Positions 4,718 through 54,977 are shown, counted from the stretch's first letter. The stretch: DNA of 64,000 bases from Neoechinorhynchus agilis (GCA_051530055.1 CM121341.1:17772784-17836783); one strand, 5' to 3'. Numbers and translations: made by a program. The notes: generated from the sequence alone by a model not told the origin.

Positions 4718-6999
4718 TTAATCTTCATCATAAAGCTGATAAGCTCGCGAATGTCCAATATCTGAAGAACTCAACGCAGGTGATGAAGGCTTAAGAGGCC
4801 GACTTTCCGATGACTCTGATGATTCTTGTGATTTTGACGATCTAGAGTATTCATCAGTGCTTTGCTTCCTTCGCTTACGCATGGAGTATAGGCAACATAA
4901 AGTGGCGAGGATCAATAAGATTAAACTAACAATGGAGACGGAAACAAAAATAAAAATAAATTTGGTGATTACTCGAATAGAATTACAACTATAAGAACGG
5001 CAAATTGAAAGGTACCCAGCATCGTCATAGTTTCCGTAGTATCCGCACACTTCGAATTGTTTGTGCTCACAAGTCACAATAAAGCGGGCACGTGTGCTAA
5101 AATTATTTCCAGCGGTATCTTCTACAATTTCAAGATTTTCAGGTCCACGGGTAAATCTTAGAAACGTACTACCGGGATGGCAAACATCATTGTTGGAACT
5201 TAGTATCACGTCGTATTTTCGCCCAGTGTCCAACAATTTGTTATCTACATCACTGCCCTTCGGTTCAGTTTGTATTTCTAAATGAGGTTTCCTATCGCAC
5301 GGTACTTTTAGAGGCTGCAAAATAATCCACACTACTGTAGTGCTTACCAACGGGATTCCCTGTCCTTTGTAGAAATCAGCATCTGAGAGGAAATTCCGTT
5401 ATTAAAAGTTGTTTTTTGTTGTCTTTATCGTATTCATCGATCTCCATCGCAAATGGTCTATATATTCTATGATCCGACGAAGGAAAATTCGTTGTCAAAC
5501 TACAGTTAGAATACAATTTTACGTATTTATAAGTATCACTTAAAGTTTTGCATACTGGACAGTCTTGGATCATTTTCAGCAACCTGCACTTAACAATGTC
5601 ACCATCGGGATCTTGAACATACAGTTGGTAGTTTTCGGTCACTTGTCCAGCCAATATGATGTGCTGGGACAAAAATCCAAATAAGGGCGAACGATTTAGT
5701 TTTCCATTCTTACGTTTAAGATAGATGATCTCAAATTAAAAAATGTAGGATCAGAAGATCAAAGCTCTTTTGTAAGAAATGCTATTTTTATTTCAACTTT
5801 TTTTAAACGAATTAACGTTTTTCTTGTTCAATATTGAAAATTATTATCAGGCAATTATCTAAAAAATATTTTTTTCAGTTCAAACAGACTAATCAATACG
5901 CTGCATTTTTTTACGAAACCGATTTGTTCATAACAATTCTAAGCAAATTTAAAACGAAAATTTCCGATTGGAAGTTTTAAATAATGATTTCATATGAGTA
6001 ATTTAATTTATTTTGGAACCTGCCAACCCATGTAGAGACGACGGGCGTAGACCTGATGGGGTGACCGTATTTCCGTGGCGGGAGGGTAAAAGCCTCCTCT
6101 GGGACTCCACTTGTGTCGATACACTCGCAGCCAGCAATCTCAAGTTCTCGGTAATTCAAGCTGGAGATGCATCGAGCGCTGCGGAAGGACGGAAAACGGC
6201 AAAATACCTCGATTTAGCCAGGGCCCATGTGTTTGTGCCTTTTGAGGTTGAGACCTACGGATCTCTTAGTAGCGAGGCTCTTCAACTTCTGAAGGATCTG
6301 AAGCGACGCCTTCAGGTTACAAACAGTGATGCAAGGTCAGGTCAATACCTGGTTCAAAATATCAATATCGCCGTGTTGAGAGTCAACACTGCAAGCATTC
6401 GGGCGAAAATTGAGGACGAGAACGGCTAGGCATATAACAGTTTGTGAACGAGCGCTAAAATAAATACATCATAAGATAGATTAAAAAAATTGTAAGAATA
6501 TAAAAATCCAAATGTTTTAACTCACACTTAAGTTCATCTAAAATGTAAGGGCATAAATGGTCGTCATTAGATCCATTGGTGGGTTAACGTTATTTATAAT
6601 GCATTCATCGACCCAGCAGCATGTTTGGTACGAAATCTTGATCGGTAGTGCATCGCATTTGACTCGAACTGCCGTCGACCCAATTAATGTACTTTCCGTT
6701 CTGTAATGGAACACTTTCCCACATTTAATCTCGACAGGATTTTCTTTAGTCCTACAGCCCTCGCACTTTAAGGTTTTTATATAAAGAATGCTATTGGTGC
6801 CATTGATACACCTGCTTTTTATTTTTTTGTATTTTGTGTTCATAACTTCGCGTACTGTGACATTAAGGAAGCATTCTTTGCCGAGCTTTGTCACCCGATA
6901 AGAGACTAATCCTCCACGAATCTGAAGGCATTGAACTGCTACCAAGTTGAAGAAAGTCAAGATTAAACCTAAAGTGAAAGGGTTCAGTGCTTGCGACAA
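4718..6999 (-). CDS. Type I membrane protein of the RGG...CCW...N-SP...DPDGD-V-CR adhesion-like family (annotated integrin-beta-like/Sib-like in invertebrates); 3 exons, ~6999-6553, 5720-5430, 5368-4718
   Basis: Signal-peptide-like N-terminus, QIRGG, TCCW, LKRKNGKLNRSP, QDPDGDIVKCR...DCPVC...C, a TM helix FIFIFVSVSIVSLILLILATLCCLY followed by RKRRK and a Ser-rich tail. Start ATG not identified; both junctions are non-canonical (see findings). Confidence 0.72.
6013..6500 (+). mobile_element. CRE-like retroelement 3' fragment inside the intron of the membrane-protein gene (antisense)
   Basis: DGRRPDG, WDSTCVD, FVPFEVETYG, QNINIAVLRVN, followed by an A-rich 3' UTR with aataaa. Confidence 0.85.
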
Positions 7000-7259
7000 A
7001 AGAGAACTTTTGACTAACGTATCATCACTGCTCTCGTATGCATAAAGTCGAAAAGTGAAAGCGAGCGTTAGTTACTTGGTTACTAATTAGCATAATCCCG
7101 GAAATTCGTAATCGATCAACAGTTTGAACATTTAAAAGCGATTCATCTTCGATGCTGCAGCGAAAAGTCCAATATTTGAGTTGCCAAACGCCAAATTTAA
7201 ATTAAAAAACACAAATTTGTAACTTTTTGTAATTTATACCTTACAAACATCTGCATCAC

Positions 7260-17384: not shown

Positions 17385-20300
17385 GTGATCAATATGCTTC
17401 AATCGATATTAGCCGATACTTCATCGAACGTTGGGATAATCCACGTGAATAGATTCGCTTTTCAAGTCGATGGCCTTGGTTATCTGGTCCAGGTTACGAC
17501 TGGTCGAGGTGGAGCGGATGGATACTGGTCAATTCGCCCCGTTGTCGATCTTGTTCTAAGTGCAGATCTCGAGCAAATTATTAGGGACGAAAAGGCGAAC
17601 GGAAGATGTTTGCTCACCAATCGATTCGAACATGATCCAGAACTGACTAAGACAATGACTGATTTTGCAGGTCTTATAGAAATGGTCATTCGGACTAACG
17701 ATTGTTGTCTGGTGATTTTAACAAGCGCAAAAAAGTTCGATCTGTTCAATATTGACACTGTTCCGTGGATTCTTAAAGCCATTCGACCTTCACTAACAGA
17801 CAATCTCGTCTCTAAGGACACTAGCGAGGCTCCTTCTTCAGGAAGTCAATTTTCCAAAGAACCGGCCAATGAACTTCGTCGCCGGTTGAAAAGGGAACGA
17901 TTTAAAACTAACGAAGAGAAAGTGGAAGCTTTACAGATTAGAGATGAATTAACCAATCGATTTGTATCTGCTACCGATGGACGATGTAGAGCCATGTGCT
18001 CAGAAAAGGAGGCGTTGTCAAGACCTCCTTTAAGACCTTTTGAAAGCTGCAAAATGGTCAAGGCGTACCAACGAGCCGCTGCTGACCAACTTATTTCCAG
18101 TATTAATGACCTTCGACCACCCGATATCCTGTGGGAAACTGTAGAGAAGAGGTCAAAGTGGTAAAGTCAAATTGACGATTTTATCGGATTGAAATGTTTC
18201 ATTCGGATTGGATTATGATCACCCAAACTCCACAAAGTTCAAATTATTCGAAACTTTTTTGAAATTTGTATGTGTGTGTGCGAAAATAAGGTCCAAAAGG
18301 TTTCACGCTCATTTTTGTTACCTATTATCTACTATAACGTTTCTATTTCGATTAATTAGCTTTTATTTTTTGAACCTTTTTCTCTTCAGAACGACACTTG
18401 CCGTATAATATCTTGTCTACTGTACTCTCGTCTTGAAATGCCATTTTTTAGTAGATTTTACCTATTTTAGTAATGGGCATTATTGTATGATTTTTTTGAT
18501 TTTTAGAGCTGATATTATGCTTGATTTAAATTCACGACCTTTGAAAACACGCAATGATCAAAAATAGGGTTTTATCAATCGCTTAGCCACTTACTACTTT
18601 AACCTCGATAAAATACTTACTTTCACTTCTTCTTCAGGATCCAGGCTCATGTTCGTTGATGGCATTCATAAGCGATCGCCTTCACGCAGTTCGAAAGGAT
18701 ATCGTTCAACAAGTTGCTTTCGATTGCGCTTACTCTCGAAAATGTCTCGAGGCTGCGGTTAGGTTTTACATCTACGCTTCAGTAAGCATCGAAGAATCTT
18801 TTGAAGAGCTCGGAAGCGACAATTTTCTTCTGAACGACAGCCAGCTACGGTCCACCATGTCGTCCCTTCTCCAGTCTTCGACGTGCGATAACGTAATGAT
18901 TGCAGTTTATCTGCTGATTGGGGTATCGGCTTCTAATCCATACTCATCGGATGATTGGGCTGAGAGTGCTGTTCACAATCTCCGATCGGATAACCGACAT
19001 CTTAGGAAAGCGATGCAAATAAGAAAGCACGTCATTTCTTTAAATTGTCCTTCATTTTGGCTCGAGTACGAACGGACACTTGCCCTTGGTGGCGACCATA
19101 AACTCATGGCGATGATGATGCTAAGGATCGCAGACGGACTTTGTGCTCGATCCCTACGGACTTTATTGCTAAGACAGGATGCTCAAGCGTCTACTGGCAA
19201 GCAAGGAAGTGGATCATTCGCAGATATCGAACTTTTGATGACAATGATGAACTGCGATGACGAAGAGTCTTTAGCCATCCATCTGTCCAGGTTTAAGCTG
19301 TACTTTAACCAATCGACAGGATTGCTGGAGGTCAGTGAACCTTACGAAGATGGATTGTTAAGAGCTTATGGACGAACTCCTCTTCTTGGTAAAATGTTTG
19401 ATAGTCCCGGGGAATTAGTTCAATTTTTGTTAGCTGTAGAAAGCAGCGAAGCACTTCTTGATCTCTCGGACGAACCCAGCAGTTTCGATCAACATGGTAA
19501 ATACGCAGGAAATATTCCAGAAGGTGATGATTCGTGCATTGAAGCAATCAGTGACAGTAACAATGCAGCAACTTTAAAGGTAGTCGCGCCAATTCCAATG
19601 GAAACGAAATTCCAATTTAAAATGCCCGAAGCCGCTTTTCAGTTTAAACCCCCTGTTTCGAATCAGTCTTCGGGACAATTTTTAGCTCAACCAAAAAGTA
19701 CATTTGCCAGGGCCTTTGATAGACCATCAGTTCAATTGACAACGAAGCCACACCCTAGCGAAACGAGCAAAACAGCACATATAGAGAGATTGAATCAACC
19801 AATAAAAAGAATCGATCCACGAAAACAAGCACTCGCAACGACACTCTTGCCCGAAATCTTTGAATCGATTGCTGATAAATTCGCGAAAAGGGAAGTCAAA
19901 ACTGTTTTCGTCAAACATAAGATCAGCACTTTGTTGGCCCAGTCGATACATTTAGAAACAACGAATAACGTGATTTGTCAAGTATGTGAAAATGTAATGC
20001 TGGATAGTAGATCAATTTCGTCGAGGTTACATAATCTTGCCAATCATTTCCAGCAACACATAAGACGACCTTGGTTGCTTAAACAGATATTTGAACGTTG
20101 GAATCGGACTGCGCGAGATATAGAACCGAAACCTCTAATGCCTGGTGATTATCCGGGTTCAACTGCTGATTATTGCAAGGATTTGGAAAATATGCTGGAA
20201 AAACTTAACCAATTCGACCATTTGATCCCCCAATTCTGCACTTGTAAAATCGTGTTAAGACTTTCCTGGTTTCCGTTTACTGTCTCTACAGTGTTGAGTG

Positions 20301-21206
20301 ACCGACAGGTGGGATTTAAAAATTTAAATCTTCCAGTCGTGGGATTGGCTTGCAAGAAAGCTAAAATGCAAGCCGTGTAATTTGAACAACATTAGTCTTG
20401 AATGCTTTTTAATATTGGTTACTCATCACGATAATCAGTTCTCCCTTAACCTAAAAAGTTCTAAAACCGTTCACGTATGGATCGTGTCGGGATATGACCC
20501 CGTTTTCGTCCGTAAAAACCCTCAGCACCATCTCGACACATCTGCATGCGTCTATGATCCGACCTATGAACATGAGTTACCAAAAGTTCCACTAGTTTGT
20601 CTTGACTCAGACCCATGTCCATCCAAACTCACTGATGCGATTTGTGCCAGTATTCTTAAATGCGGCCGCCGATTGCCCTTCAATCCGATTGAATTATCAG
20701 TTTGGTCATGTTTGTCGTTCGTTCGCACTCTGCGATGCCGCAATCCATCACGACTGCTGGCTCGTGTCCTTTGTGAGAACGTTCTGAATTCCGTTAGATC
20801 AATTCCTCCCATTCCTTCTACACCAGAAGTCTGTCTCTACCAAAATATGGGGCTCTTTAAACGACAACTCGTCCTGTTACTACATGACTTTGACGGTTCT
20901 TCAGTTGGATACGGCGATCGGAAGTGTGGAGCCGGCAATATAACGTTGCGGAGGCTCAGATTGTGGGGAATGGTCGACGAAGCTCATGTATGGTCTACGT
21001 TGGAAAAAAATGCAGAACCTCTACTTATGCGACTACCTGCTCAGGTTACACTTCAACTTCCTATTCCTGAACCAAGTGAAAGAAAACGATCATTAGAGAA
21101 AACAAAGGACGATTCTTTGAACAACGCACTCGATGAAACGTTTGCAAAACTCAGAGCGGTCGTTTCACTAAAGGAAGATCTGGACAAACTGTGCAGAAAA
21201 GTCTAA
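17385..21206 (+). CDS. MCM3AP: MCM3AP/GANP (SAC3 domain), probably one gene over three ORFs
   Basis: EEKVEALQIRD...GRCRAMCSEKE; MVKAYQRAAADQ...LRPPDILWETV(E/K)YLL...FISDRLHAVRKD; C-terminal CKIVLRL. Junctions at 18145-18611 (non-canonical) and probably 20309-20438 (GT-AG). Confidence 0.8.
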
Positions 21207-22589: not shown

Positions 22590-23343
22590 TCAATCTTTGG
22601 GTACAGCGTAATCATAATGGCCACAACCCATCGCGATAAAAGTGAGATATATTGATTCCAACTGATTACCCATTGGATCGTTCGGACTGACACAAAGTGG
22701 TTGTTTAAATTTTGGGTTCGAGCTAATAATCACAATGTTTATATTGTAGGCGTTTGCAACTGTCAGAGGCAGAAGATCCCCAAGATCTGTGTTAAAATAT
22801 CTATCCTTCTTGAAGTTATCGATATCTATTTCAAGATTTTCAACAAATGGCGTATATTGATCGACTGTTGCAAATCTAAGAGACAGGACGCTTTCAGATT
22901 CGCAGCTTTAGATGATCGCGCCACTCTTTAATACATTTTAATCGGATATCGAAATGAGTTATATCGCGTTCAACAAGGCCTTTCGCTCGCAAAGCTTCGC
23001 AAACTGAACTGAAGAAGCAGTTACCATCCGCACGAACTTTAATTTGCCGAAGATTGAGTTCTTCTAACAGCTCATCTAATCTCGTTTCGTGTTCATCTTC
23101 GGTGTTCGAGCAACATCGGTAAAGCAACTGCTTTGCTGTAATCTCTTTTTTGTGGTACGCGGAATGGTTGTAAGTGACCACGAGTACCGCATCCTTCAAA
23201 AATCTATTTAAATGCTTGAGAACCTTGCGAGCGGACTTGTGCATTACAAAACTTTTACGTTTTAATGCACAGCAAACCGATTTATACTTTTTATTACTCA
23301 TATCAGCGCTATGAAAAGAATGTAAAACTAGTGGCATATTCAT
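22590..23343 (-). CDS. OTU-domain cysteine protease (copy 1), 2 exons
   Basis: VRADGNCFF catalytic Cys motif; a second exon in another frame (DQYTPF...GCGHYDYAVPKD*) supplies the catalytic His; short insert at 22865-22907. Confidence 0.85.
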
Positions 23344-23503: not shown

Positions 23504-25329
23504 TTAGATCAATTGAAAGTATTCTGAAGCTAAATTGCTTACTCCGAAAAACTTTAAGCTGATTCTTTGTATCACAAACCAGCCATTCGAATCCGAATTA
23601 ACGACAGAAATATCCCAACACCCTCGTGGATCTTCGAACCAATGAAGTACTGAAGTAAATGACTGATTCCGAAATCCTTTGCTTCTATCGTCATCATTTA
23701 AACGGGATCCAAGAATCCAAATCGGGCGCTGTTGAGGGGATTTGATTTCAATTGCCAACTTTCCTCTTCGAATCGGCCGCGAACTCATTGGCACGATATT
23801 CACTTCTAAAACTAAGTGTTCCAATTTGACTACAGCGGAATTTGTTTCTTCGCATGCTCGTGTACAAATTCTAGACTTTTTGAAAGTATTCGGTCCTACG
23901 GTTTCGAAATCGGAATGGTTGATTGGAACGTTGCATAAATGCAATTCTGGCGAAGTTTTGTTGCGTAAATATATAGCGTTGCGTACAAATAATTCAGGAT
24001 TTAAAACTCCATATCCAAACAAATCGCTAACCCACAATCCAGCCCCATTTTTCCACCAAGCGTATTTTTGAGCTTGGTATTTTTCCTCTGAAGGTTTCCT
24101 CGATGACACAACAATCCGAGCTTGAATCTGTCGATACGTTAAATTCCGATTTTCCTCTAAACCCAGTGCGATGATCGCCGCAACCATTGGAACAGCCGCC
24201 GAAGAACCAAAAAAATTAGTATTGCAGGTTCCATCCGGTCCCGCTGTAACGATGCCATTGGAAGTGCCATCGCCCGTGAAAGCGCTTGTCATGATTGAAG
24301 CACATCTCTCAGCGAATTTCGGCGTTGAACGGTTCTTTAAAATACCTGCAACTACAATTGAATAAATGGAGTTTACCATTCGATCGACTGAGCAGTGATC
24401 AAATCTAAAACCACCGTTACCCGCGGGAACTACAAAAGACGATCCAATGCCATTTCGACCGAGCTTGGCATTATTGGCTAACATTGCTTCCATTAGCCCG
24501 CTTCTATGCTGTACGGTTTTTCCATCATCTTGATCACCGAATGAAGTGCTGTATACGTCCACTATGGAATTTACGGCAGCAGTTAATTAAAAGTCGAGCA
24601 GTTTGGAAATTGGCAAGAAAAGTCGGTTAATATAGCGGAATACTCATGTGAAATTCTTAAAACTTTTGCGCTTAAAACTAAGTAAAATCAATATTGTATG
24701 CAAACCCTACAGTTTGGCTGTCTACTTCGCCCTTTTGAAGTAAACTGCAAGACTGCCACTTAATCCAAAACTTTGCTCCAGTGATTCGTTAAAGTTTAAT
24801 TTGCCCCTATGCTTGGCATTGATATTAAAATCAACCAATCGCGAATTGTAAGCGATTCCAACAGTACAAAACATATTATTCGGTTTTGCAGCGATTATGC
24901 CAGCGCATGCAGTGCCATGTTTGCTGTATAAAGTGGGATAGGGAATCAATGTTAAAATGCTGTCTTTCAATTCCGGATGATCTATTTCGATCCCTTCGTC
25001 CACAACGCCAATTACCACATTTTTCCCAGTGTAACCGAGCTTCCAAGTTCGTTCAATGCTAAATCCGGATCGATGGAGATGCCAACTTTCTGGCCATTTG
25101 TTATCATTGAAACGTCGAAACCATGGCCTTATTTTTATAAAGTCGAATTCGGATAGAATGTAAGCGGTAATTATGTTATTTATTAGCATTTTAAATATAC
25201 TCTAAAATTATTTTATGATTTTGCATGCGCACAACGGCTTGCTGAATCATCTACCACTTACGCGTTTGAAGATTTGAAATCTTGTCCCTTCTGAGCTAAA
25301 CGAGTATGAAATTTCGAGAATTTTGGAGG
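23504..25329 (-). CDS. Furin/kexin-like proprotein convertase (copy 1): catalytic and P domains intact, native 5' end missing
   Basis: FRR|FNDNKW maturation site, VVDEG (Asp), HGTACAG (His), GNGG (oxyanion Asn), GSSAAVP (Ser), GFRNQSFTSVLHWFEDPRG P domain. GT-AG intron 25202-25261; second intron ~24571-24759. Confidence 0.85.
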
Positions 25330-28899: not shown

Positions 28900-29043
28900 T
28901 TACTGTAAGGGTAAAAAAATAAATAATTTCAGGTATTGCCTTTCCTTGCGATTTCAGTGCGTTAACATCGAATATATATTTTTAAAAAGAAATTTCATCA
29001 CGAGTTTAGATAACTAAAAATTACAAATTTAACGTACATCTCT

Positions 29044-31338
29044 TTAGATGTGATGAAAATTTGTTCCTTCGTCTACTTTATTCCTTTCGGGTTTTTCGAA
29101 TGGTATTGAAAAAGCCGTTAAACTCTTTATGCTCGATGACAGATCGTCAAGAATATCTGTGGGAACACGCTCACTGAAAGCAATCGGCGATTCAGTTTCT
29201 CTTATTTCTTTATCGACAAGATTCTTGATTGTAATTGTGGAAGCCTTCATCTCAATCTTTATATCTGGGTCCCAGAAAAGATCCAGAAGTAAAACAAAGT
29301 CGAGGTTAAACCTAGTGTATGTTGGAGAAATATCCTGCATCGTGGAAATATCATCTTTTGTACAAAGAATACTCAGTTGCGCTCTCGGCATCCATTTAGT
29401 TGGCGCTTCTTCGCTGCACGATATCAGCTGGGACGACAAAGCACTTGGTTCGTTAAAATCAACCAATACTTTTACTTGTTGGTTATCCGTTTGGGCTTCT
29501 TTGCTAATCGCTAATTCTTGTTGTATCTCATTATTGGGGCACTTGGTGGTCATTTTATTGAGTGGAAACGTTCGAATGAGTACACACTGGAATTGCCCCA
29601 AAATATATTTCACAGTTCCCGCATAATACTTTATGTCATTTCTCCCACATGGATTACTGTGTTGAAAGCTCGCCTCAATGACGGGAATGTCTTCACATGT
29701 TGAAGTCTTCAAAATCATTTCGGAATTTTCATCGTCTTTTCGCCGACTTGAAAGTCGAGAAATCTCTCGATCAAAAGAACTTGGCATCGACCTGTACCTG
29801 CTTGCTTTCTCTTTAATCTCCTCGATTCTTGATGCAACGATATCCATCCCATTCTCCAGTTTTATATCAGGTCCAATCAAACTGCTTTTATTAGGATGAT
29901 TTATCAAAATCCGTAGGAACAACTGTTCACTTTTCGTGCTCACTACTTCACCTAAAATACCCTCACAAGGAATAAGTATAGTGGCCGCCTGCAGACGATC
30001 GGTTGTATAATTTACATCATAAACAGAAGATAATCTCTCTGAGTTATCATGAAATAGTCTATGATAATTCTCCGCTGTTAACACCGGAAATCTTTCTACG
30101 TCAATTTCCGTCTTTGTAATGCCACTCGGGACAAACAATCCAAAACGAACAAAGCACTGCTCGTCATTGATTTTTATTTCAGTCTCTTCTTTACCCAACT
30201 TGAACTTTGGTTCTATTGTTATTTCGCTCTTTTGAGCTTCGAAATCAAAATAGAACATTTCATTGGTATCCGTTGTAGGAAACACTGTAAATTTCGGTTG
30301 CTGGTATTTATCAAGAGCAAGTGATGGTTTCATATTTGCCTTTTCACAATACAAATTAGCAAACTTTAACCGTTCGTCTATTTCCTTCATAATGTTATCA
30401 ATAGAATTGCATAATCTACTCAAAATATACAATACACGACTAAGGGGTTTAGAACTAGAAGGATCAGTTAATTTCAGTAAAGCAGTGTTTCCATCACGCA
30501 GGTAAAATTCAGTATCTGGAATCGGAACATCTTGTCCTGCCAAAGTATTAAAAATCCGTTCCACTTGAATTCCACAACTGAGCATGAACAATCGGAATGT
30601 TGAGTACGCGTTCTTTTTGTAAGCTTTGCGAGTTACCATACTTGACTCGGTCCATTTTGAATCTTTATATAAAATATCGGCAACACTGGATGAGAGAAAA
30701 TCGTTGCTGATTTGACACAAGTCCAACAGAAAGCTATCTAAAGTAATGCCTACTTCTATTAGTTGAGCATTTAGATATTCAATCATTTCTTCACATGAAA
30801 GTTCTACCAGCTTTGTTTTATCCTTTGGCGTTCCATCTGACAACCGTTTCCTTTCCCGCATTTGAAAATCCTTTTCCTGATCAATACTATTTCTCAACTC
30901 TACTATTTTATCATCTTTTTTCTCTAAATCTACATTCTGCTCACTTATATTTTCATCTATTTCTGAATAGAACTTTTCAGTGTCTGTTTTATCATCTTCA
31001 CCCTTTTGTACATTTGACCTTCGTTTTTTACCACTGAAGATCGATTCCAAGAAGCTAAGATCATCATCGATATCCAAATCTTCCCAAAATAAATTTTGCC
31101 CGATGTTATCTGCAGTGGGTTCAGAGGGGCTTGTTTTATGGACCTTAACAATGCTGATCAAAGGCGCGACGCGGTTATCCATTTCATCGAAATCAATCGG
31201 TGAAAAATCACCATCGTTAAATTTTTCAATGTGTAAGATATCACTGACTCGTCCCTTTTCAAGCGTATCGGTATCATTCACTTCTGCCACTGAACGTAAT
31301 CTCAAACTTTGATCAGATACTAGCTCCTTACTGGACAT
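29044..31338 (-). CDS. Unknown 764-aa protein with an acidic N-terminus and coiled coil
   Basis: Long ORF; ATG preceded by a TTTCAG acceptor at 31349-31354; no confident family call. Confidence 0.8.
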   Translation of the reverse strand: MSSKELVSDQSLRLRSVAEVNDTDTLEKGRVSDILHIEKFNDGDFSPIDFDEMDNRVAPLISIVKVHKTSPSEPTADNIGQNLFWEDLDIDDDLSFLESIFSGKKRRSNVQKGEDDKTDTEKFYSEIDENISEQNVDLEKKDDKIVELRNSIDQEKDFQMRERKRLSDGTPKDKTKLVELSCEEMIEYLNAQLIEVGITLDSFLLDLCQISNDFLSSSVADILYKDSKWTESSMVTRKAYKKNAYSTFRLFMLSCGIQVERIFNTLAGQDVPIPDTEFYLRDGNTALLKLTDPSSSKPLSRVLYILSRLCNSIDNIMKEIDERLKFANLYCEKANMKPSLALDKYQQPKFTVFPTTDTNEMFYFDFEAQKSEITIEPKFKLGKEETEIKINDEQCFVRFGLFVPSGITKTEIDVERFPVLTAENYHRLFHDNSERLSSVYDVNYTTDRLQAATILIPCEGILGEVVSTKSEQLFLRILINHPNKSSLIGPDIKLENGMDIVASRIEEIKEKASRYRSMPSSFDREISRLSSRRKDDENSEMILKTSTCEDIPVIEASFQHSNPCGRNDIKYYAGTVKYILGQFQCVLIRTFPLNKMTTKCPNNEIQQELAISKEAQTDNQQVKVLVDFNEPSALSSQLISCSEEAPTKWMPRAQLSILCTKDDISTMQDISPTYTRFNLDFVLLLDLFWDPDIKIEMKASTITIKNLVDKEIRETESPIAFSERVPTDILDDLSSSIKSLTAFSIPFEKPERNKVDEGTNFHHI

Positions 31339-37640: not shown

Positions 37641-37678
37641 TGTTTCAAAATGTGGCAACCTTTTCAAACAGTCCAAAA

Positions 37679-39349: not shown

Positions 39350-39509
39350 ATACTCTTGTGAGCGATCGTCCGAGGAACTTGCACTACTTCGAAATTTTCT
39401 AATAATTAATTATAATTTAGCTTGTTCATGATTTATTCGTTATAATCCCTGCTATGTTCATACGTCTAAATGACAACAAAGACGCTATAAAATTACTTTC
39501 GAAAATGTC

Positions 39510-40263
39510 ATGAATATGCCACTAGTTTTACATTCTTTTCATAGCGCTGATATGAGTAATAAAAAGTATAAATCGGTTTGCTGTGCATTAAAACGTAAAA
39601 GTTTTGTAATGCACAAGTCCGCTCGCAAGGTTCTCAAGCATTTAAATAGATTTTTGAAGGATGCGGTACTCGTGGTCACTTACAACCATTCCGCGTACCA
39701 CAAAAAAGAGATTACAGCAAAGCAGTTGCTTTACCGATGTTGCTCGAACACCGAAGATGAACACGAAGCGAGATTAGATGAGCTGTTAGAAGAACTCAAT
39801 CTTCGGCAAATTAAAGTTCGTGCGGATGGTAACTGCTTCTTCAGTTCAGTTTGCGAAGCTTTGCGAGCGAAAGGCCTTGTTGAACGCGATATAACTCATT
39901 TCGATATCCGATTAAAATGTATTAAAGAGTGGCGCGATCATCTAAAGCTGCGAATCTGAAAGCGTCCTGTCTCTTAGATTTGCAACAGTCGATCAATATA
40001 CGCCATTTGTTGAAAATCTTGAAATAGATATCGATAACTTCAAGAAGGATAGATACTTTAACACAGATCTTGGGGATCTTCTGCCTCTGACAGTTGCAAA
40101 CGCCTACAATATAAACATTGTGATTATTAGCTCGAACCCAAAATTTAAACAACCACTTTGTGTCAGTCCGAACGATCCAATGGGTAATCAGTTGGAATCA
40201 ATATATCTCACTTTTATCGCGATGGGTTGTGGCCATTATGATTACGCTGTACCCAAAGATTGA
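39510..40263 (+). CDS. OTU-domain protease (copy 2), 2 exons
   Basis: Same as copy 1; both exons are open; insert at ~39943/39946-39988. Confidence 0.85.
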
Positions 40264-40459
40264 CAAAGTTTGAAAGAGACTAAATAAAGAAGGGACGTAT
40301 GAAATATCCGCTGAAGCTGCTATTTCAGTCAATTGGGCAGCGCTAAAATATGGAAATCAACTTTATAGACGCTTTGTTTAGTGTAAAATCGTCGGGCAAC
40401 ATTTGACTCTTTATTACAAAATTCAGTTTTCCGAAGTAATACATTGAACGCCCAATTAA

Positions 40460-41335
40460 ATGTTCAATTTTTATCGTGTTTGTTCAAAAAAAGCTTTTCC
40501 TTGCATTAACCGTAAAATCGGACTTATCTTCTTTACAACAATATGTTATGTATTCACCATGGCAACCATTTCATTAATCTTTACACGCTGTGAATTTTCG
40601 ATGAATACTGATTCTCGTGATGAACATTTCCGCACAGTGAGTGATTCTTATGGAAGATGGTTCGTCGCGACTAAAGGACCAGGACTCTTTCCTGTGGACA
40701 ACTCATGTTGCCTCGGTCATGTCGCCTGGCGGGCACCGTGCCCTCTTCTGCCAATCAAAAAGGAGTGCCGTGTGACTAAATGCACTTTGGACGATTGCGG
40801 AAATTGCGAGGGGAGATATCGGATTGTGGAATGCTGCGGCGAAGGGACTGTGCATCCACGGAGATCCGTTCAATGTTGTATTGAGACGGGAAACACGAAG
40901 AGAAACCAGGATTGTCGTGAAAAGGAACGAAGGCCGAGAAGAGCTATGATCTGTTGCAGTCCAAAAAGCAAACCAAGGGAGACAGTGGACTGCTGCAACG
41001 AAGAAAACAAAACAAGAGTTTGTTGTAGCCAGAAAGGAGGACGAAGAGAAATGTTGCTGAACGGCGATGGAGAACGACATGAACGAAAAACTTTGGTTTG
41101 TTGTAGTTGCCACGACAAACAAAGATCGCCGATATGCTGTAAGGCGGAAAGTGGACCGAGGAGAGCAGTGGTTTGCTGTAGTCAGGAAAGGAAGCCCATG
41201 GGCACCGCAGAATGTTGTGTTGAAACGAGAAGATCGCGAGGATCAGAATCGAGAGGTTACTCGAAAAAGCAGGACGAAGGATGTTGTTCTGTTCATATGA
41301 GGACACCAAAATGTTCTCATTCGAACTTTTATTGA
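40460..41335 (+). CDS. Cys-Cys repeat protein (copy 2)
   Basis: Intact 291-aa ORF; APCPLL here vs APCHLL in copy 1. Confidence 0.75.
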   Translation: MFNFYRVCSKKAFPCINRKIGLIFFTTICYVFTMATISLIFTRCEFSMNTDSRDEHFRTVSDSYGRWFVATKGPGLFPVDNSCCLGHVAWRAPCPLLPIKKECRVTKCTLDDCGNCEGRYRIVECCGEGTVHPRRSVQCCIETGNTKRNQDCREKERRPRRAMICCSPKSKPRETVDCCNEENKTRVCCSQKGGRREMLLNGDGERHERKTLVCCSCHDKQRSPICCKAESGPRRAVVCCSQERKPMGTAECCVETRRSRGSESRGYSKKQDEGCCSVHMRTPKCSHSNFY

Positions 41336-42532
41336 TTTCGAGTAGTAGTATTCTCGCTGAGATTTATAATTGAACCCATTATAGAATAAAAAATTTTGAA
41401 AGAAATATCACAACTGACCACGGGACACGGTTACGGCCATAGATACGAAACGTCATCAAATGAACTTACTTTGAATTTGTGTTTGTGGCGCTTAGCATTT
41501 TCACCACCGTATCCATGTATTCGTTGGCCTATTTATCCCTGAACGAATTCATAGCAACTGGTGGGACATTTGCAAACTTATAAATTTGTCGTCCGAATAT
41601 ACTACTTTTCTTTGAATTCTAAAACTAACGTCACTTGTGACGAAAACAACTACTCATTCTTTCTTGTCTTGAGACAGATCTCTAATGATTTGGGACACGA
41701 AAGCACTCATTGAATATAATTGGAAACGCATGGTGATTGATTTACTTTGATTTTGCTTTGCTGCCACTTAGTCATTGCGATTATAGCGATATTGTCGTCT
41801 TTCAGTGCATTTCATATAGGTCTTTAAGGGTAGAAATTGTCTCGATGTTCCGAAGTTTCAATCTGGAATAATGCCTTGTTTGAACTCACACAAAGATCCT
41901 AAGCATTGCAATTGTCTTTATTATGGAGATCAGCAATTTTAAATAATGGTAGAGCCAACTTCGAAAAAAAACATTTAATGTATTCTACATGCTGATTTTA
42001 CCAATCTTTATTTTGCTAACAAGCAACCTTGATAAATGCATAAGATTGTGTCTACGAAAAATCGGATTTAGTAAAATTCCTTCAATTTTCTGGTTCAAAA
42101 ACAAACATAAATAATTTAATCTTCAATCATTTTTATGATAATTTTTTGGTTCGTTTCTAAGCCGGAAAGTTTCTGGTTGAACTTAAAGATCAGTTAATTT
42201 ATCCTGTAACGATCACTACTGAAAATAATCGATATAAAATCCTTCTGGCTAATCAAATTAGAATTGCTGTGAGCGTACTTCTGGACATATCGCCTCGTCA
42301 CTCATTGTTAGTTCACCACAACTAAGACTTTTACGCCTAAAATCTAATAATGTTACGATCGTAAAATTTCTTCTTAAAAAATCACGAATATTCGGTGTGG
42401 CATCACGGTTGGGAGGTTTTAATTGATTAAATGTCGTCTCTACCATTCATCATGACCTTTATTCCGATAATTTAAACTCAACTTGCTTTATGTGATCTTT
42501 GTGCCAAAACATATCTAGATTTTTGGTAATAG

Positions 42533-45530
42533 ATGGAACTGTATAGAAAGAGCAAGCGCCCAACGATAAAAGAAACGGATCCCCAAAGTTACGACGGGAC
42601 TTGGCTTGGAGTTTCTCCTACGGTCAGAATCAAACATTATAGCGCTGCAAAGCGAACAATGCAAATGAAACAATGTGTCGTGGACACTGAATATAACTTA
42701 TCTCCACAACTTGGAAGTAAGAGCATATAATTCCATTTGTAACAGTTTATTGTTTTTTTAACAGGGAACGTTCGGTCCGTTGGAACCATTACAAGTAACG
42801 GTGCGTCGTACATATTGTCAGGATTTGCAGGAGATTATAGGTACAATATCTATTTACGCGCGGACAAATACTACACATCATCTCCTTGGGGCACCTTCAA
42901 CAACACAGTTCTGTCCATTCGATATTTTTGTCTGACAGGTCGTTTAGAGACGGCGCAATCGATCCTTCCGAGAATGTTAGTGCGCATGCATGAAGAAAAG
43001 GAGGCCTGTCGAACATTCTTCAGAGTTGCTGCTCTAATCGAACTTTACCGGGATATTCCAATACTTGGAAGTATAGTACATAAAATCGCGTTAGTATCCC
43101 TTTTGGGGATTCATAAAGTATAACATACTTAGGAGTCATAGAGAATTGTCGTCGGAGCGAATTTAATCGTTTTTTGACGACTAGTTACCCCCGGATAAGT
43201 TTGCATTGACATTATTATTATTAGAAATATTTCGTGAACGTTGTGTTCACCTCTTCAGTCTTGTCTAAAAATACACACACTGAGCGTTAGGCCTTTTAGC
43301 TCGACCCTGGCATTGCCCATCTTGATAGATAAACAAAAAAAAACAAAAATCAATATCCAAACGTAGGGAGTACGCACGAAACCAACGACCCGCGGATCCG
43401 AGCTAAAAGGCCTAACACTCAGTGTGTGTATTTTTTAGACAAGACTGAAGAGGTGAACACAACGTTCACGAAATATTTCTAATAATAATTATGTCAATGC
43501 AAACTTATCCGGGGGTAACTAGTCGCCAAAAAACCATACTTAGAAGTATTGGTTATTATTGATTAGAATTTAAAATAACTAGGAATTTCAAAAATAACTT
43601 GTTGTTTGTATCGACAAATGTTGGATATGAAGAATCGTGAAAACTAAAATTACATCTTGATTGCGAAATGTACCTTAGATTCGCGATTCTCACGCGATTG
43701 GTTCAGTTTTTTCGTTATTTTAATTTTTACGTTTAGAATCTCTGACGCCACAGCCTTACATCAAACCTTAGTGCACTTGAGTGTATATTTTGCCATGGAA
43801 CTCGTTAAAGCATTTGAATGTGGTTCGAAAAGAGAAGCCGTTGCCGAAGTTCATTCTATTATTAACAATCCGGTATTCTTTTTTTGCCTAATCATAACGT
43901 AAGTTTGAATTAAGCTCGTTGATAAAATCTCTCAATTACAAAATGGAACACTAGCATTGGCCGAACCTGAAGGATTCGTTTTTCTTGCTTATGCGATGAT
44001 ATTCGCATTCTACTCTTTGCTAGGAATTCTGGAGGATAAATTTGGGATCACCGAAATAGGACAAATCCTCGACGAAAACGTTCTTGCTGAATTGGATGTC
44101 AATGTTTGCTTTTCCAAAATTGAACTCTTGTTCAATAAGATTACTACTCATGCGCATCGACCAGGCCCCATAGATTCATTTATAATAATTTATTGCGAAG
44201 TGATGTGGATGCAAGGGAAAACTGAGAAGGTGGAAGAGACGCTTGGTGTTGGAACCGGTAATCAGTGGTATTTTTAGGCAAAAGAACGAATCGACTCTAT
44301 TTTTGATCTTTAAGTTGAAAGATGTGGCACTTGTTTTGCGAGGCGACCTACAATCTATTTTCCTTCATCATTGTTCGCAATTATGCTTAAATACAATCTA
44401 AAATTCCTTTTAAATAACATCATAATTACAAAAGACAATGGTTGGTACCCCTTATAACGATTTAGTGCCGAAAACCCGAAAAAATCGAAAAGACCAGCTT
44501 AGATAAACAGTTTTTAACTGTTTCCTATATTCAAAATCTTAAAATATGAGCTGACATTGTTTTTTGTATCTAAGATTCCGATTTTCCGATTTAAGGATAA
44601 GCGATATACTTTGCGCTGTCTGAAATCAATCTAATTCGACTTTGAAGATTATATTACTTTTCACTGGTGGACCGAAATATATTCGAAGGTTTCTTTTGTT
44701 TGGCTTGGCACTGATTGCAATCAAAATTCTACAATTTATCAAACTTTGAGTTTTTTATGGGTGCTATTAAAGTCACGTTTAAGAGGTAGGGACGAATTGA
44801 GATTATCGTAAAAAATGAATTGATCAATTTTTCAACCCCTTGAAATCGATCGGCGATATAAGGAACTTAATATTCGCATTCGAGTCCTTACCGTTGCAGC
44901 ATTACCGATTCTGACCATAAACAATATCGATCAGAAGCTAATCAACATTTGAATGCTCATAAGCTATATCTTGATCACAAATTGAGAATAAAAGAGGAGC
45001 CTGAGGTCGATAACGTGATCGATATATACGAGGTACCTTCTACAAAGTTACATTTGATTTAACAATAATCCTACTTATAGGATATTTTAAATTTGAATCC
45101 ATACGATCATGTCCTTGTGGGCTACCATCACCGAGTTTTATTTAAGCATCCGCCAGACCAGTGCCGTATGTCCAAATTGACTAAATACGTTTTGGAAGTG
45201 ATTGATTGTGCCTGTACAAAGAATTCACCAGACAACTGGAGAATGTTGATGGAATTGATTCTTAAAGCTTACGTGGATCCCATTAGATACTCTCAAGTGT
45301 TTGATCAACTAAGAGTTTTCAGATCCGAAGTTTTGTCATATTGGCAATGGTATCATTTGCCACGATCTAACGATAGCAGCCAGCTTACGGAATGTAAATA
45401 TTTCATCGATGTTTGCATTTTCGGAGATCATGATGGGATGAAGACTCAATTGTGGACGTCACAGTTTAAAATCGAATCTGATTTGTTAGACATTGCACGA
45501 AATGTGTTTGCGATCATTATGCGCGAGTGA
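42533..45530 (+). CDS. Unknown multi-exon helical protein (5 exons inferred)
   Basis: ORFs join in frame through GT-AG introns 42716-42774, 43873-43914 and ~44230-45080, plus a non-canonical junction at 43117-43736. Confidence 0.6.
43169..43534. mobile_element. Fold-back element with ~125-bp inverted arms, each with a hammerhead motif (intronic)
   Basis: aga-CTGAAGA-G-GTGAAC-acaac-GTTCAC-GAAATATT-tct at 43442-43480, mirrored at 43223-43261; 9-bp direct repeat catacttag at 43124-43132 and 43535-43543. Confidence 0.88.
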
Positions 45531-47237: not shown

Positions 47238-48223
47238 TTATTTCTTCGTTCGGGAACCGCGCGCAGAAAAAAACTGGTTTAGATTATCCCTCAGCTCCTC
47301 TGAAACTGCCTTATATTCGCCCGTTAAACTGTCCATAACCCGCATGCTATTGATAATGTCTAAAGTTTTGGTAAGATATATCGATTCGATTGCGCCTCTC
47401 GTCTTATTTTCCATTTCCTCAACAAGTTTCCCAAGATTACAGATGTGACTTGCGAATCCAGTAGCTAAAGGAGCATCCATCTCGTTTTGTTCCATCAAGC
47501 TACCTCCCAACTTAGTTTGTCCATTTGCTGTACTTTCCAACCATAACAGAGTACTTGAGGTCAGTTTGTATTGAGCTCGATGACCACTTCCACTGATGGG
47601 ACTCAATCTGCTTCCTGCAGTTCGTTCTTGGACCTCAACGACATGAATGCTGTCCCAACAACCACGACAAATAGTCTCAGATCTGCTTGAAACGGTTTGA
47701 TTTTTAAACAAGACAGCAACCGCGAACCCTTCATCAAGATCCCACATATAGACTGATGAAAGCCCACTTGTGAGAACACCGTCGTCGTCTACTGGTGATA
47801 AACCGTAGTATTGATTCCAGTACTTTTCAAATACGCGAGTGTGGCCTTCATCGCTCAGGAACTCACAAAAGCACCACACCCGCTTACACCATTCGCAACT
47901 TTTTCCAGTGCCCTCAATCGTTCACTCGGGTACGCGTTCGAGTTCGCTTGTCGTAGTGGTGGATAGTATTCGTTTGTCCACGGAGAACGATAAGAGTCGC
48001 CTTCCCGGTTGTACTCACAAGCTAAAAAGTCCTTTCCAGCCTTAGAATCAGTGCGGATTTTAAGAGGCTGGTCAATTGAACCAAGAAGTTGGTCCATCAA
48101 ATCAGGCGCTAAAGCAATGAGGTCATCCAAGTTCTCGTCCATGTTAAAAGGAGGAAGACGGCGACTCAAGTCGAGTGCTGCTCGAACACGGTCGTCCGTT
48201 GTTTGTTGACTAGAATCAACCAT
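47238..48223 (-). CDS. CAPZB: F-actin capping protein beta subunit, 2 exons
   Basis: ALDLSRRLPP, DQPLKI, DFLACEYNREGDSYRSPWTN, SSVYMWDL, WDSIHV, HICNLGKLVEEME; 53-nt insert at ~47834-47886. Confidence 0.95.
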
Positions 48224-48587: not shown

Positions 48588-49391
<804 letters not shown>

Positions 49392-50825: not shown

Positions 50826-51130
50826 TTATTTTGAAGATATTACATAATTATTCGCCGTCCTCCTCCTCCTCCTCCTCAATTGTCGCCGAATGCTTGCAGT
50901 GTCGCCTCTCAACACGGCAATGCTGATATTTTGAACCAGGTATTGAACCTGAAGGCGTCGCTTCAGATTCCTCAGGAGTTGAAGAGCCTCACTGCCAAGA
51001 GATCCGTAGGTCTCAACCCCAAAAGGCACAAACACATAGGTTAAATCGAGGTATTTCGCCGTTTTCCGTCCTTGCGCAGCGCTCACTGCATCTCCAGCTT
51101 GAATTACCGAGAACTTGAGATTGCTGGCCG
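50826..51130 (-). mobile_element. CRE-like 3' fragment, same subfamily as 6013-6500
   Basis: GRKTAKYLDL...VFVPF-VETYGSL-SEALQLL--LKRRLQV nearly identical to the 6.0-6.4 kb copy, with small internal deletions. Confidence 0.85.
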
Positions 51131-51998
51131 CCCGTTTTAAGAATTAATTATATTCTTTTATTCTTTCTTTCGATTCAAAAGGTTTCATGGCATCCAATTA
51201 TTATTGAAATCGTTCAAAAAATAATACATGGACTCATTCTCACATATCAAATGTACTCTTTCATGACGTCATTTGACTTTTGCGGACTCTTAAGCCTTCT
51301 TCCCTGGATGCCGCGAAAAGAATTAGTGGTTGAAACATTAGATCAACTTTCTAAAATTTCGAAAATATTGGAGCTTTATAAAAAACTCCGACTAAGAATG
51401 AGATAAATTTGGGGCTCCAAAGGTTTCGAAAGTGTTTTTTCGAGGACATTATTGAGCAATAAATATGTCAGCGCCCATGTTTTACTCTCGAAAACGGCGG
51501 GACAACTAATAATTCGCGAAATAGCAGCCAATTGCGATGTACGTGTTCGATATCGGGTTTCATTCGATGTTCCGGCTATGAAAATCCACCTTCGGGGACC
51601 CTTTTGCAATCAATGAGGTGTGTCCGGAAAATGTTACACTTACAAAGTATGGCGCAGAAATTAAAAGAATTTGTCATTTATGTCGCTTATCGATACTCGA
51701 GATGGATCTTTAAAGACGAATGCATATATTTCGACTTTGAAGTCGGGCCAGCCGGTAGCTCTTTTTCTGTGTCTATGTGTGGCCTTTTTATGGCTAATAA
51801 TTTTTCCTTGGGCATGCATGAAATTTCACAAAATGCTCACTTCAAAGTTATCACATTTTGCGCTTTTTTATCGATTAAAGGAATTGAAATCAGTTGACAT
51901 ATTTATATTGCTATGATTTGAGTGTGCATTGGTGTTTATCCTTTCGACCGATTTCAGAAGATAAAATTCGATTAAAACGGAAAAATTAAAAACAAGAA

Positions 51999-52982: not shown

Positions 52983-53542
52983 ACAGTGAAGCAGTACTAC
53001 AGGTACGCATTTTGTTACGATCGCTTTCGTCCAGCCATGAACACAAGAAGAATGTCAATTTGGGGATAAAGACAGAAATTATTACCCAAAAATCGATGAG
53101 CTCGATATAGTTGGTTGGTAAACAAAGTCGTAATCACAAAGGAACTCGAAGCAGTGCAAGCGATGATTTCGTATGCCCTTGACGCGGGAGTAATAGGTTG
53201 ACCTTCCAGAGTGGACGGCAAAAATAGAGGAAATTGGATGCAATGATGATAAGTTTTTGCTCTGAACCGGTCAATTCGGCTGTCGATGTTGCGCTGGTTG
53301 TCGCTTCGGGAGCCAGTTGTTTAAAGAAAATCATTAAACTCATAGATAATATCTCTTTCGTCATAAAATTTCATGGTCGGATGAAATAATATTAATAGAT
53401 TTCCAAACTCTGCTTCGCGTTAACTTTGAAACAATTTTTATTTTTACGAAAAGTTTCGCGCTTTCCTTTCCCTCACAAATGATTTTACAACGTTTTGCGG
53501 ACGGTAAAAGTTTGAGACGGGCACGCCGATTAATTTCTGATA

Positions 53543-54977
53543 TCAACAACAATTATCGATTCTTTTCAGATTGGCCTTTCCCTTCTGGTCTTTAAAGTTG
53601 AACTGGTTAATGTTTTTCTTCGTTGCACCATTATCGAATTGATTGGCAATACTAAGATGTTTTGTGAGTGCCGATTCCGCGATTTTATAAAACATTTCAT
53701 CTATTTTGTCATTAATTCTCCGCTCCGTGAGAAACTAAGATACCAGCGGTGAGTTATCGACAAATCACGTTAATTTTATCTCTTGCACTTGTCTCGAAAA
53801 ACGGTATATTTAGCGTGTACGCCAGTTGAGAGCCTTCTTCGTTGCTGACAAGTTTTAAAATAGTGCCTGAATCGCACTTGTTCCCCACCAAAACTTTTGC
53901 AACTGTTGAATTACAGCAATGGTCGTCGATCTCGCTAATCCATTTGCGGACTCGTTCAAACGAAGCTCTGTTACTCACATCATAAACAAATATCACCCCG
54001 TCTGCTCCTCGGTAGTAAGTAGAAGTTACAACTCGAAATCTTTCTTGGCCAGCAGTGTCCCATATTTGCATTCGACAATTATAGGGACCAATTGTTAGAC
54101 ATTTAGTTTTAAAATCTACACCGATGGTGCTTATATATAATCCCGTAAAAATATCATCGGTATATCGGAGCATCAAGCTCGATTTTCCAACCCCTGTCAT
54201 ATAGAACTGTTTATTAAAATAGTGTGCTAAAATTAATTTTACTATCTCCTTTAAAAAAGTTCCGATTCCTTTTGTAGTGTATTTAATTGTAACAATTATT
54301 AAAAGCTAAATGGTCTACATTCTTAATCAACGGTAACGTTAAAATTTGTTGAGCAAATAACAGTTAGAAACTGCACCAAAATTATTTCACTCTTTTTGAA
54401 CAAATTTAGCAAAATAATGCATTTAAAGGCGTAAAGTGGTTAGCAAAAGTCTCAGTCATATTGAAATGCGTACGTTTCTGCAACTTTCCTTCATCATATT
54501 GACTTTTTATTTATAAAAAATTTTAAAGGACGGGTTGCCAATATGTTTCCTAACTTCAGTTCTCTAATTGCGCTGTCAAATGAAATTCTTTATATTGATA
54601 AATTCTATTTCTAGTTCAAAGAACGCATTATTCCTTCGCTCAATAGAATTGGGAATTTAAAATCGAGAATTACACCCAAATAGAGTTTTTCGGCGCTTCC
54701 GAGCATCAGCTCTTTTTGGCGATTTACTGGATAAACTAGGAGCTGCAATGTAAAACATAGATATAAAGGAAAATTAAACCTAAAACTCACATTACGTCGC
54801 AGCTCTTAGGAACGTTTTTCGAAACATAACTTTTACCTTCATCTTACCTGATTCACCGACGATAAGAATTTTAAAATTTTTGTTAAAAGAGTTTAGTGGG
54901 CCCGGATCGCTTGTCCTAATGTTTTTGGACTGACGAGTATGCAAGTCGATCGATTTTATTCTCCGTTCGAATCTCAT
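53543..54977 (-). CDS. Rab GTPase, Rab35-like; 3 exons (54977-54848, 54193-~53766, ~53702-53543)
   Basis: KILIVGES|GVGKS, WDTAGQERFR, VTSTYYRG, VGNKCD, FETSAR; the third exon DEMFYKIAE...IDNCC* gives a CC prenylation end; intron 1 is canonical. Confidence 0.92.

Follow-up and report, generated by a model that had tools for sequence, protein, structure and literature searches.

The window and its intervening sequences

The window analyzed here is a stretch of 64,000 nucleotides (nt) from the acanthocephalan Neoechinorhynchus agilis (GCA_051530055.1 CM121341.1:17772784-17836783), which holds many genes and few introns and has a GC content of about 0.39. The published genome of this worm is 46.2 Mb long, with an N50 of 16.4 Mb and 94.3% of the sequence in three scaffolds, and its transcriptome has a GC content of 0.39 (PMC12690905). 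A first-pass annotation had proposed that nine junctions in the window are interrupted by TA-bounded, non-canonical inserts. We compared seven of the nine with homologues, and the spacing and scores of these comparisons bear the proposal out for the genes encoding CAPZB, GANP/MCM3AP, a Rab35-like protein, and a membrane protein (two junctions), but not for a convertase gene, where a GT-AG join aligns to furin without gaps. We therefore consider it fairly probable, from genomic sequence and homology, that four conserved N. agilis genes hold between them at least five inserts that are true introns with ends other than GT-AG and are spliced from RNA. These inserts are given below together with ordinary introns of the same genes; slashes mark the cuts.

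5370..5430, minus strand: membrane-protein gene, second putative non-canonical intron, 61 nt, reading GAATA/CGATAAAG...TTTCTA/CAAAGG, with a TAC direct repeat
5722..6553, minus strand: membrane-protein gene, first putative non-canonical intron, 832 nt, reading TTTA/TGCCC...CATCTA/TCTT, with a TAT direct repeat
18144..18610, plus strand: GANP/MCM3AP gene, putative non-canonical intron, 467 nt, reading GTA/GAGAAG...TCGATA/AAA
20375..20438, plus strand: GANP second intron, probably ordinary GT-AG, 64 nt (GTGTAA...AATCAG)
47832..47884, minus strand: CAPZB gene, putative non-canonical intron, 53 nt, reading GTA/AGCGGGTGTGG...CCACACTCGCGTA/TTT
53702..53765, minus strand: Rab35-like gene, second intron, putatively non-canonical, 64 nt, reading GTG/ATTTGTC...GACAAAATA/GAT (AT..TA)
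54194..54847, minus strand: Rab35-like gene, first intron, ordinary GT-AG, 654 nt, in the P-loop codon (TCAG/GTAAGA...GACAG/GG)

The window also has short GT-AG introns of the ordinary kind, whose acceptors are T-rich, and some lie in the same genes as the inserts (Rab intron 1 and GANP intron 2), as had been claimed. The automatic gene models of the assembly use ordinary introns yet stop exactly at the non-canonical inserts. The broken models comprise a 122-residue CAPZB fragment, a Rab model ending in ...KINVICR, and two membrane-protein fragments, and the models cut off at inserts are P0122, P0123, P0243, and P0244.

Protein homology at the five junctions

At all five homology-supported junctions, removal of the insert restores the reading frame and the motif spacing of the protein family, in agreement with the first-pass annotation. 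In the CAPZB gene, removing 53 nt joins the open reading frames (ORFs) as ...EKVANG/VFEKYW..., with ...GTTGCGAATGGTGTA/TTTGAAAAGTACTGG as the predicted exon-exon join. The closest relative, P0001, is 72% identical and colinear over this join, and all relatives are gapless there, reading ...AN(G/N)VFEKYW.... The joined protein scores 261.5 bits against Pfam, compared to 248.0 bits for the sole in-frame GT-AG option, a 26-nt intron that would leave 9 extra residues within a helix; no relative has these residues. The CAPZB insert is flanked at both ends by a GTA direct repeat and can be written in four equivalent placements (GT..GC, TA..CG, AA..GT, and AG..TA). The exact cuts that had been assigned to the inserts, each after a TAN trinucleotide, proved to be one base off wherever homology can tell; in CAPZB they yield Ile for an invariant Phe and lower the score to 258.5 bits. 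A metagenome scan for CAPZB transcripts returned a 40% relative as its only match.

The two GANP ORFs match positions 28 to 63 and 61 to 288 of the SAC3_GANP profile. After removal of 467 nt, the joined product scores 90.0 to 90.1 bits, while other joins score 83.1 bits (one added residue) or 81.3 bits (repeat to repeat, 458 nt), and GT-AG joins score 75.9 bits (446 nt) or 61.9 bits (497 nt). The equivalent placements of this insert are TA..GA, AG..AT, and GA..TA. Searches of the PDB with both GANP ORFs gave no matches.

In the Rab35-like gene, reaching the C-terminal ...NCC prenylation motif needs a frame change after the first intron. Removal of 64 nt yields NVDEMF, and the NVxxxF spacing is then gapless compared to all Rab structures and to the relatives from Pomphorhynchus laevis and rotifers. 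This join beats a 61-nt GT-AG join by 5.6 to 6.6 bits against PDB Rab1 and Rab35. The closest named relatives of the Rab protein are from rotifers, and the top local identity (61%) is to the acanthocephalan P. laevis. The P. laevis Rab35-like orthologue (L005; WNNJ02000690.1, 3001-8462) contains five GT-AG introns totaling about 4.7 kb, compared to two introns in the window gene. The position of Rab intron 1 is common to both genes, and the putative non-canonical intron lies 9 nt from the nearest (last) P. laevis intron, which is GT-AG, in this comparison of one gene. For the P. laevis Rab gene, we withdrew an intron that had seemed non-canonical, as a GT-AG intron shifted by 4 nt encodes the same protein.

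We found the membrane-protein family by an exhaustive HMMER search; among its members are a paralogue from the same genome (P0245) and a contig that resembles a transcript (P0247). Neither insert site is interrupted in P0245, which contains an ordinary 52-nt GT-AG intron. Removal of the 832-nt insert leaves 28 residues from CCW to N(R/S)SP, the same number as in P0245 and P0247, whereas the canonical options at this site give 31, 24, 19, or 12 residues (+3, -4, -9, or -16). Removal of the 61-nt insert leaves 23 residues from NFPS to (L/V)S, compared to 23 in P0247 and 24 in P0245. There is no GT-AG or GC-AG option within 60 nt of this insert, and more distant options lose the conserved CxLTTNFP motif. 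The equivalent placements are TA..TC, AT..CT, TG..TA, and GC..AT for the 832-nt insert and TA..TC, AC..CT, CG..TA, and GA..AC for the 61-nt insert. The 832-nt insert holds an antisense fragment (6007-6426) of a long interspersed element (LINE) that is about 90% identical to 50873-51128. This fragment recurs in the window and suggests that the insert is an old intron later struck by a retroelement.

The membrane-protein family is multicopy in N. agilis, with further loci on CM121343.1 (L003, 7,816,151 bp) and, some 40 kb upstream of the window, on CM121341.1 (L004). The gene models divide the L004 paralogue near the 832-nt site into two genes, P0249 and P0246; the gap between the two holds a plausible GT-AG intron, and the locus is uninformative.

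No equivalent placement of any of the five supported inserts is GT-AG, GC-AG, or AT-AC. Canonical alternatives cost 13.5 bits in CAPZB, 14 to 28 bits in GANP, and 5 to 7 bits in Rab. The claim that GT-AG alternatives are absent or worse stands for these five junctions and fails for the convertase junction, where the GT-AG join scores better.

Boundary repeats and pairing of insert ends

All nine inserts had been described as starting after TAN and mostly ending in TAN. At four of the five supported junctions, TA directly precedes both cuts; in Rab, TG precedes the 5' cut and TA the 3' cut. Three of the four junctions with TA at both cuts have 3-nt repeats (GTA, TAT, and TAC), and for each supported insert there is a placement that ends in TA. 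The chance of TA at both cuts for a random pair of positions in the window is p = 0.0042 with fixed placement and 0.075 with joint sliding of up to 9 nt, and four of five at the latter rate gives a binomial probability of about 1.5e-4. The earlier caution that TA is common in AT-rich DNA was well founded for the junctions that homology does not anchor: options with TA at both cuts lie near almost every junction, canonical ones included. When homology is not used as an anchor, there are about 350 in-frame joins around most junctions, of which up to five have TA at both cuts by chance, and the same holds at canonical introns.

In the CAPZB and Rab inserts, the two ends pair with each other in one shared register, which leaves a single base free on the 5' side and three on the 3' side (pairing from +2 to -4), and the bases of both stems coincide with the junctions defined by homology. 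The CAPZB insert has an inverted repeat of 13 nt (85%) and a hairpin z score of -2.97; the arms of the Rab insert are 20 nt long and 80% complementary, and its hairpin z score is -2.25. Three canonical introns, by comparison, have fold z scores near 0. In GANP, the inverted repeat is subterminal: GAGGTCAAAGTGGTAA (from 18149) pairs with a stretch ending at 18606, with 14 of 16 positions matching. We found this repeat by direct comparison; the search tool missed it because an exact 6-mer seed is absent. The 61-nt insert has no hairpin (fold z score of +0.6). Terminal inverted repeats had been reported for six inserts, and we can confirm them for three (CAPZB, Rab, and GANP), those of the others not being significant.

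We also scanned the window for ORF-joining hairpins in the same register (1 nt unpaired 5', 3 nt unpaired 3') with arms of at least 9 bp. The favored length class contained 8 to 10 matches, compared to 1 to 4 in the other classes. Most matches lie in transposons or antisense frames, and the 3 to 4 genic ones are too few to serve as independent evidence. A 34-nt hairpin at 20345-20378 (plus strand), with 9-bp arms, overlaps the canonical 64-nt second intron of GANP and is a rival to it; its removal in this register would link two long ORFs in frame.

Other junctions of the window

The remaining junctions are not supported as non-canonical or have canonical options.

22866..22924, minus strand: OTU gene junction; frame repair needs removal of a length of 1 mod 3
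24562..24759, minus strand: convertase intron, best read as ordinary GT-AG, 198 nt (TTAA/GTGGCA...CCATAG/TG)
28906..29044, minus strand: 29-kb gene, junction candidate with TA at both cuts, 139 nt, joining ORFs of 779 and 352 residues (frames read from the sequence)
42717..42764, plus strand: 42-kb gene, first intron, ordinary GT-AG, 48 nt (GTAAGA...TTTTTAACAG), without structure (z = -0.3)
43090..43736, plus strand: 42-kb gene, junction with an in-frame GT-AG option of 647 nt

We rejected the non-canonical convertase join (24584-24760), since the canonical join aligns without gaps to furin and scores 158.3 bits, compared to 157.6 bits. Alignment to kexin also favors the canonical join (146.7 versus 142.8 bits), and the Pfam S8 profile does not discriminate (106.8 versus 104.8 bits).

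At the OTU junction, the candidates are a 49-nt GT-AG intron (22876-22924), a 40-nt hairpin (22866-22905), and a 31-nt GC-AG or non-canonical segment (22876/7-22906/7). Their Pfam OTU scores (19.9, 21.3, and 19.4 bits, respectively) do not discriminate, and their spacings relative to yeast Otu2 are -1, +2, and +5 residues, so that the 49-nt GT-AG intron fits best. The 40-nt hairpin has a z score of -3.46; we set this reading aside, as its support is no better than that for the canonical 49-nt intron. From these comparisons the OTU junction is probably canonical. The junction sequence recurs in a second copy of the gene at 39946-39987 (plus strand), and the duplicated copies are identical there.

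Rival readings of the 139-nt candidate in the 29-kb gene are that a 178-nt GT-AG intron (28899-29076) is removed or that the ORFs belong to different genes. This gene has no Pfam match, and the candidate is without structure (z = +1.9). A search with a joined 4,314-residue query of all lineage-specific ORFs found no homologues of the 29-kb or the 42-kb gene. A foldback element of about 372 nt (43166-43537), with arms of 106 nt that are 97% complementary, lies within the 43090-43736 interval, in an intron of the 42-kb gene.

Neighboring genes and repeats

Single-exon genes in the window include those for triosephosphate isomerase (TPI), a forkhead protein, and a SEPHS2-type selenophosphate synthetase. 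The last (1028-2170, minus strand) has an in-frame TGA at 2102-2104 (...NLKG-U-GCKIP...) and is probably a selenoprotein gene, judging from its sequence; no selenocysteine insertion sequence element was found in the window with Rfam at the gathering threshold. Rfam and tRNA scans of the window gave no matches. The TPI gene and the retroelement copies are located as follows.

48588-49346, minus strand: triosephosphate isomerase gene, intronless
2262-4384: LINE-like or Penelope-like retroelement copy
6007-6426, plus strand: LINE-like or Penelope-like retroelement copy
34572-37484, minus strand: LINE-like or Penelope-like retroelement copy
50829-51143, minus strand: LINE-like or Penelope-like retroelement copy
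56919-58833: LINE-like or Penelope-like retroelement copy

The LINE-like family (RVT_1 plus a conserved C-terminal domain) is present in several copies or fragments, of which two sit antisense within genes, and the window also holds a Penelope-like element with a GIY-YIG domain. We observed an inverted segmental duplication (21302-26500 versus 33105-41551; identity, 96.6 to 99.6%) that carries genes for a Cys-rich protein, an OTU protein, the convertase, and an enoyl-CoA hydratase. In copy 2, which is degenerate, a LINE of 3.5 kb has been inserted (34298-37804), and a deletion of 534 nt has taken away part of the convertase gene.

Proposed mechanism and alternative explanations

The most economical mechanism, and our best reading, is RNA splicing at relaxed sites, as in the larvacean Fritillaria borealis. 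In such a mechanism, the upstream exon would end in TA, the intron would also end in TA, and removal would leave a single TA. A major-type spliceosome tolerant of odd terminal dinucleotides would cut the pre-mRNA precisely at the repeat, the pairing of intron ends would probably draw the splice sites together in the short hairpin inserts, and ordinary GT-AG introns would be processed in the same transcripts. The inserts may derive from a small TA-duplicating, inverted-repeat DNA transposon, because the TA duplication, inverted ends, and lack of coding capacity make up an anatomy like that of a miniature inverted-repeat transposable element (MITE). Sequence and homology show the inserts themselves, the restored frames and spacings, the lack of canonical alternatives, the TA repeats, and the hairpins, whereas we infer removal from RNA and not from DNA, the role of the spliceosome, and the transposon origin.

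Several points weigh against splicing at relaxed sites. The evidence comes from genomic sequence and protein homology, and the tested set amounts to five junctions within a single window of 64 kb. The repeats leave the exact boundaries ambiguous, and the CAPZB, GANP, and Rab inserts each have a placement that starts with GT and ends in something other than AG, although the GT start costs a Val-to-Ile change in GANP and Rab. The 832-nt junction has a GC-AG rival, albeit a poor one (+3 residues), and Rab has an in-frame GT-AG rival of 61 nt (53701-53761) that costs just one added residue. The P. laevis Rab orthologue has GT-AG introns only, and in this analysis the trait is seen in the N. agilis genome alone. 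Pairing cannot be a general requirement, because the 61-nt and 832-nt inserts lack significant end pairing. A search for multicopy MITE families, which the first-pass annotation had recommended, found no second copy of any short insert in the window and four other loci of the same genome; no transposon family is thereby shown, and 64 kb is too little to exclude one. Among the inserts, only the LINE fragment of the 832-nt insert recurs in the window.

The lack of significant end pairing in these two inserts also counts against the idea that the inserts are excised from RNA by a hairpin-guided route without a spliceosome, as in euglenids, in which the paired ends would set the cuts and the intron would perhaps be released as a circle. 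The CAPZB and Rab inserts would suit such a route, being near-complete hairpins with their bases at the homology-defined junctions, in the same register, and without a pyrimidine tract; the nonconventional introns of Euglena likewise have terminal inverted repeats plus direct repeats at the junctions (PMC12501133). However, the repeat arms of the 467-nt insert lie 5 and 4 nt away from the junction, the inserts do not carry the CAG/CTG signature of euglenids, CAPZB offers a good GTAAG 5' site, and such machinery is not known from animals. We therefore regard hairpin-guided excision as unlikely. We give still less credence to programmed DNA excision, in which germline-limited, TA-bounded segments within coding exons would be cut precisely from somatic nuclei, an animal equivalent of the internal eliminated sequences of ciliates, and the assembly would represent the unexcised form. 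At four of five junctions, the conversion of TA-insert-TA to TA is formally the Paramecium-type signature, and the assembly was made from DNA of pooled whole worms of both sexes (PMC12690905). A whole-worm assembly should, however, also or mainly hold the excised somatic form, and the ordinary introns in the same genes show active RNA splicing there. The ciliate end consensus TAYAGYNR is found at no insert end, and programmed elimination is not known in Acanthocephala or rotifers, which leaves this explanation highly improbable.

It could also be that nothing here is unusual and that the inserts are ordinary GT-AG or GC-AG introns accompanied by small lineage-specific protein indels, or else reflect pseudogenes, insertion alleles, or assembly errors. 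This is true of the convertase junction and plausible for the OTU junction, and the single-residue cost of the Rab rival, the chance origin of TA pairs around most junctions, the canonical outcome for the apparent P. laevis case, and the degenerate duplicated gene block in the window all point the same way. Extending it to the five supported junctions is harder. The lone canonical option in CAPZB is a 26-nt intron whose nine helix residues occur in no relative, the 61-nt membrane-protein insert is without any canonical option within 60 nt, and inserts of 53 to 832 nt are too large for indel errors. The flanking ORFs are all intact, with catalytic or family motifs and, in Rab, the terminal CC, and it would be extraordinary for a 46-Mb genome to have four genes disabled by five insertions within just 64 kb. 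On balance, we doubt that ordinary introns, pseudogenes, insertion alleles, or assembly errors account for these junctions.

If splicing at relaxed sites is correct, it would show that compact animal genomes that evolve fast can relax the GT-AG rule repeatedly, here in a parasitic rotifer relative with a genome of 46 Mb, and it would become possible to compare how spliceosomes adapt, for example in U2AF, U1, and U6. Standard gene finders split genes at these inserts and produce fragmented models, which, if the inserts are widespread, may be one reason why genes seem lost and BUSCO completeness is low. The authors of the published N. agilis assembly ascribed its low BUSCO scores to gene loss (PMC12690905). 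Public N. agilis RNA-seq data exist (BioProject PRJNA1223661, 74 libraries; transcriptome, Zenodo 10.5281/zenodo.17199078), making the claim directly testable. In the searchable literature, the genome papers of N. agilis, P. laevis, and Seison hold nothing on non-canonical introns, and we found nothing relevant there on non-canonical splicing in rotifers or acanthocephalans.

Comparison with known systems

The inserts do not match U12-type introns (5' ATATCC, 3' AC, and a TCCTTAAC branch site), as the sole AT-starting insert, that of Rab, begins with ATTTGT and ends in TA. They resemble mirtrons in hairpin size and in a 2-nt 3' stagger, but their ends are not GT-AG, and Rfam identified no microRNA in the window. 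Like the internal eliminated sequences of Paramecium, they are short, TA-bounded inserts in coding sequence whose precise removal leaves one TA. Ciliate elimination acts on the DNA of the somatic nucleus, and none of the insert ends in the window (TAAGCGGG, TATGCCCT, TACGATAA, TAGAGAAG, and TGATTTGT) fits TAYAGYNR.

Stowaway-like MITEs, which are derived from Tc1/mariner elements, share with the inserts a TA duplication, terminal inverted repeats, and a noncoding interior; CAPZB and GANP fit this description, as does Rab with its TG and TA. Of the two features that define introners and MITE-derived introns, terminal inverted repeats are present in CAPZB, Rab, and GANP and the TA duplication at four of the five junctions; the 61-nt insert has a direct repeat only. 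Unlike Stowaway-like MITEs, the hairpin inserts of 53 to 64 nt are far below the usual MITE size and have no extra copies in the window.

The nonconventional introns of euglenids are also similar, in that their terminal dinucleotides vary, inverted repeats close to the ends draw the splice sites together, direct repeats blur the boundaries, and conventional introns occur alongside (PMC12501133, PMC11282704). In contrast, the euglenid CAG at +4 to +6 that pairs with CTG at -8 to -6 is absent from all five inserts, and the window hairpins leave 1 nt and 3 nt free at their ends, compared to 3 nt and 5 nt for euglenid introns. In euglenids, excision probably proceeds without a spliceosome and yields circular products.

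The closest structural match is to the introner elements of the parasitic dinoflagellate Amoebophrya, which have inverted repeats of 8 to 20 nt and direct repeats of 3 to 5 nt over the exon-intron boundary (Farhat et al. 2021, PMC7789003). The CAPZB insert, with an inverted repeat of 10 to 13 nt and a GTA direct repeat, fits this pattern closely, and in both systems hairpins would bring the exon ends together. Amoebophrya differs in being an alveolate protist in which more than 60% of introns are non-canonical and the introner elements form repeated families, and a TA-specific repeat is not among its features (PMC7789003).

The animal precedent for transposon-like, non-canonical U2 introns is F. 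borealis (PMC13326754, PMC11282704). It too has a compact genome in which non-GT-AG introns occur beside GT-AG ones (Soo et al. 2026, PMC13326754). Its introns are flanked by short direct repeats with (T/C)A, and their terminal inverted repeats suggest a MITE origin. These non-canonical U2-type introns of a larvacean tunicate were reportedly described by Henriet et al. in 2019. The likeness drawn by the first-pass annotation is apt for the way of working but not for the boundary rule, since the best-anchored junctions end in TA and not in the YAY-type AC or AT. The Fritillaria form, with YAY upstream and YAY at the 3' end, fits two of the five inserts (TAT/GC..TAT/ and TAC/GA..TAC/). The CAPZB, Rab, and GANP inserts fit neither YAY nor the AG..AC and AG..AT classes but end in TA, and the YAY placement in CAPZB is the one that swaps the invariant Phe for Ile, at a cost of 3 bits. 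Among those F. borealis introns that could be searched, we found no TA-ending or AG..TA class and none of 12 window intron ends. GT-AG introns make up 5% of those in F. borealis and are common in the window, which moreover belongs to another phylum, Acanthocephala, and has two inserts that are near-complete hairpins. To our knowledge, large-scale non-GT-AG introns with transposon hallmarks are known from one animal lineage only, the tunicate Fritillaria. On this comparison, we class the N. agilis inserts as putative transposon-like, non-GT-AG introns in a second animal lineage, with an apparent boundary rule, TA, that is unlike that of Fritillaria.

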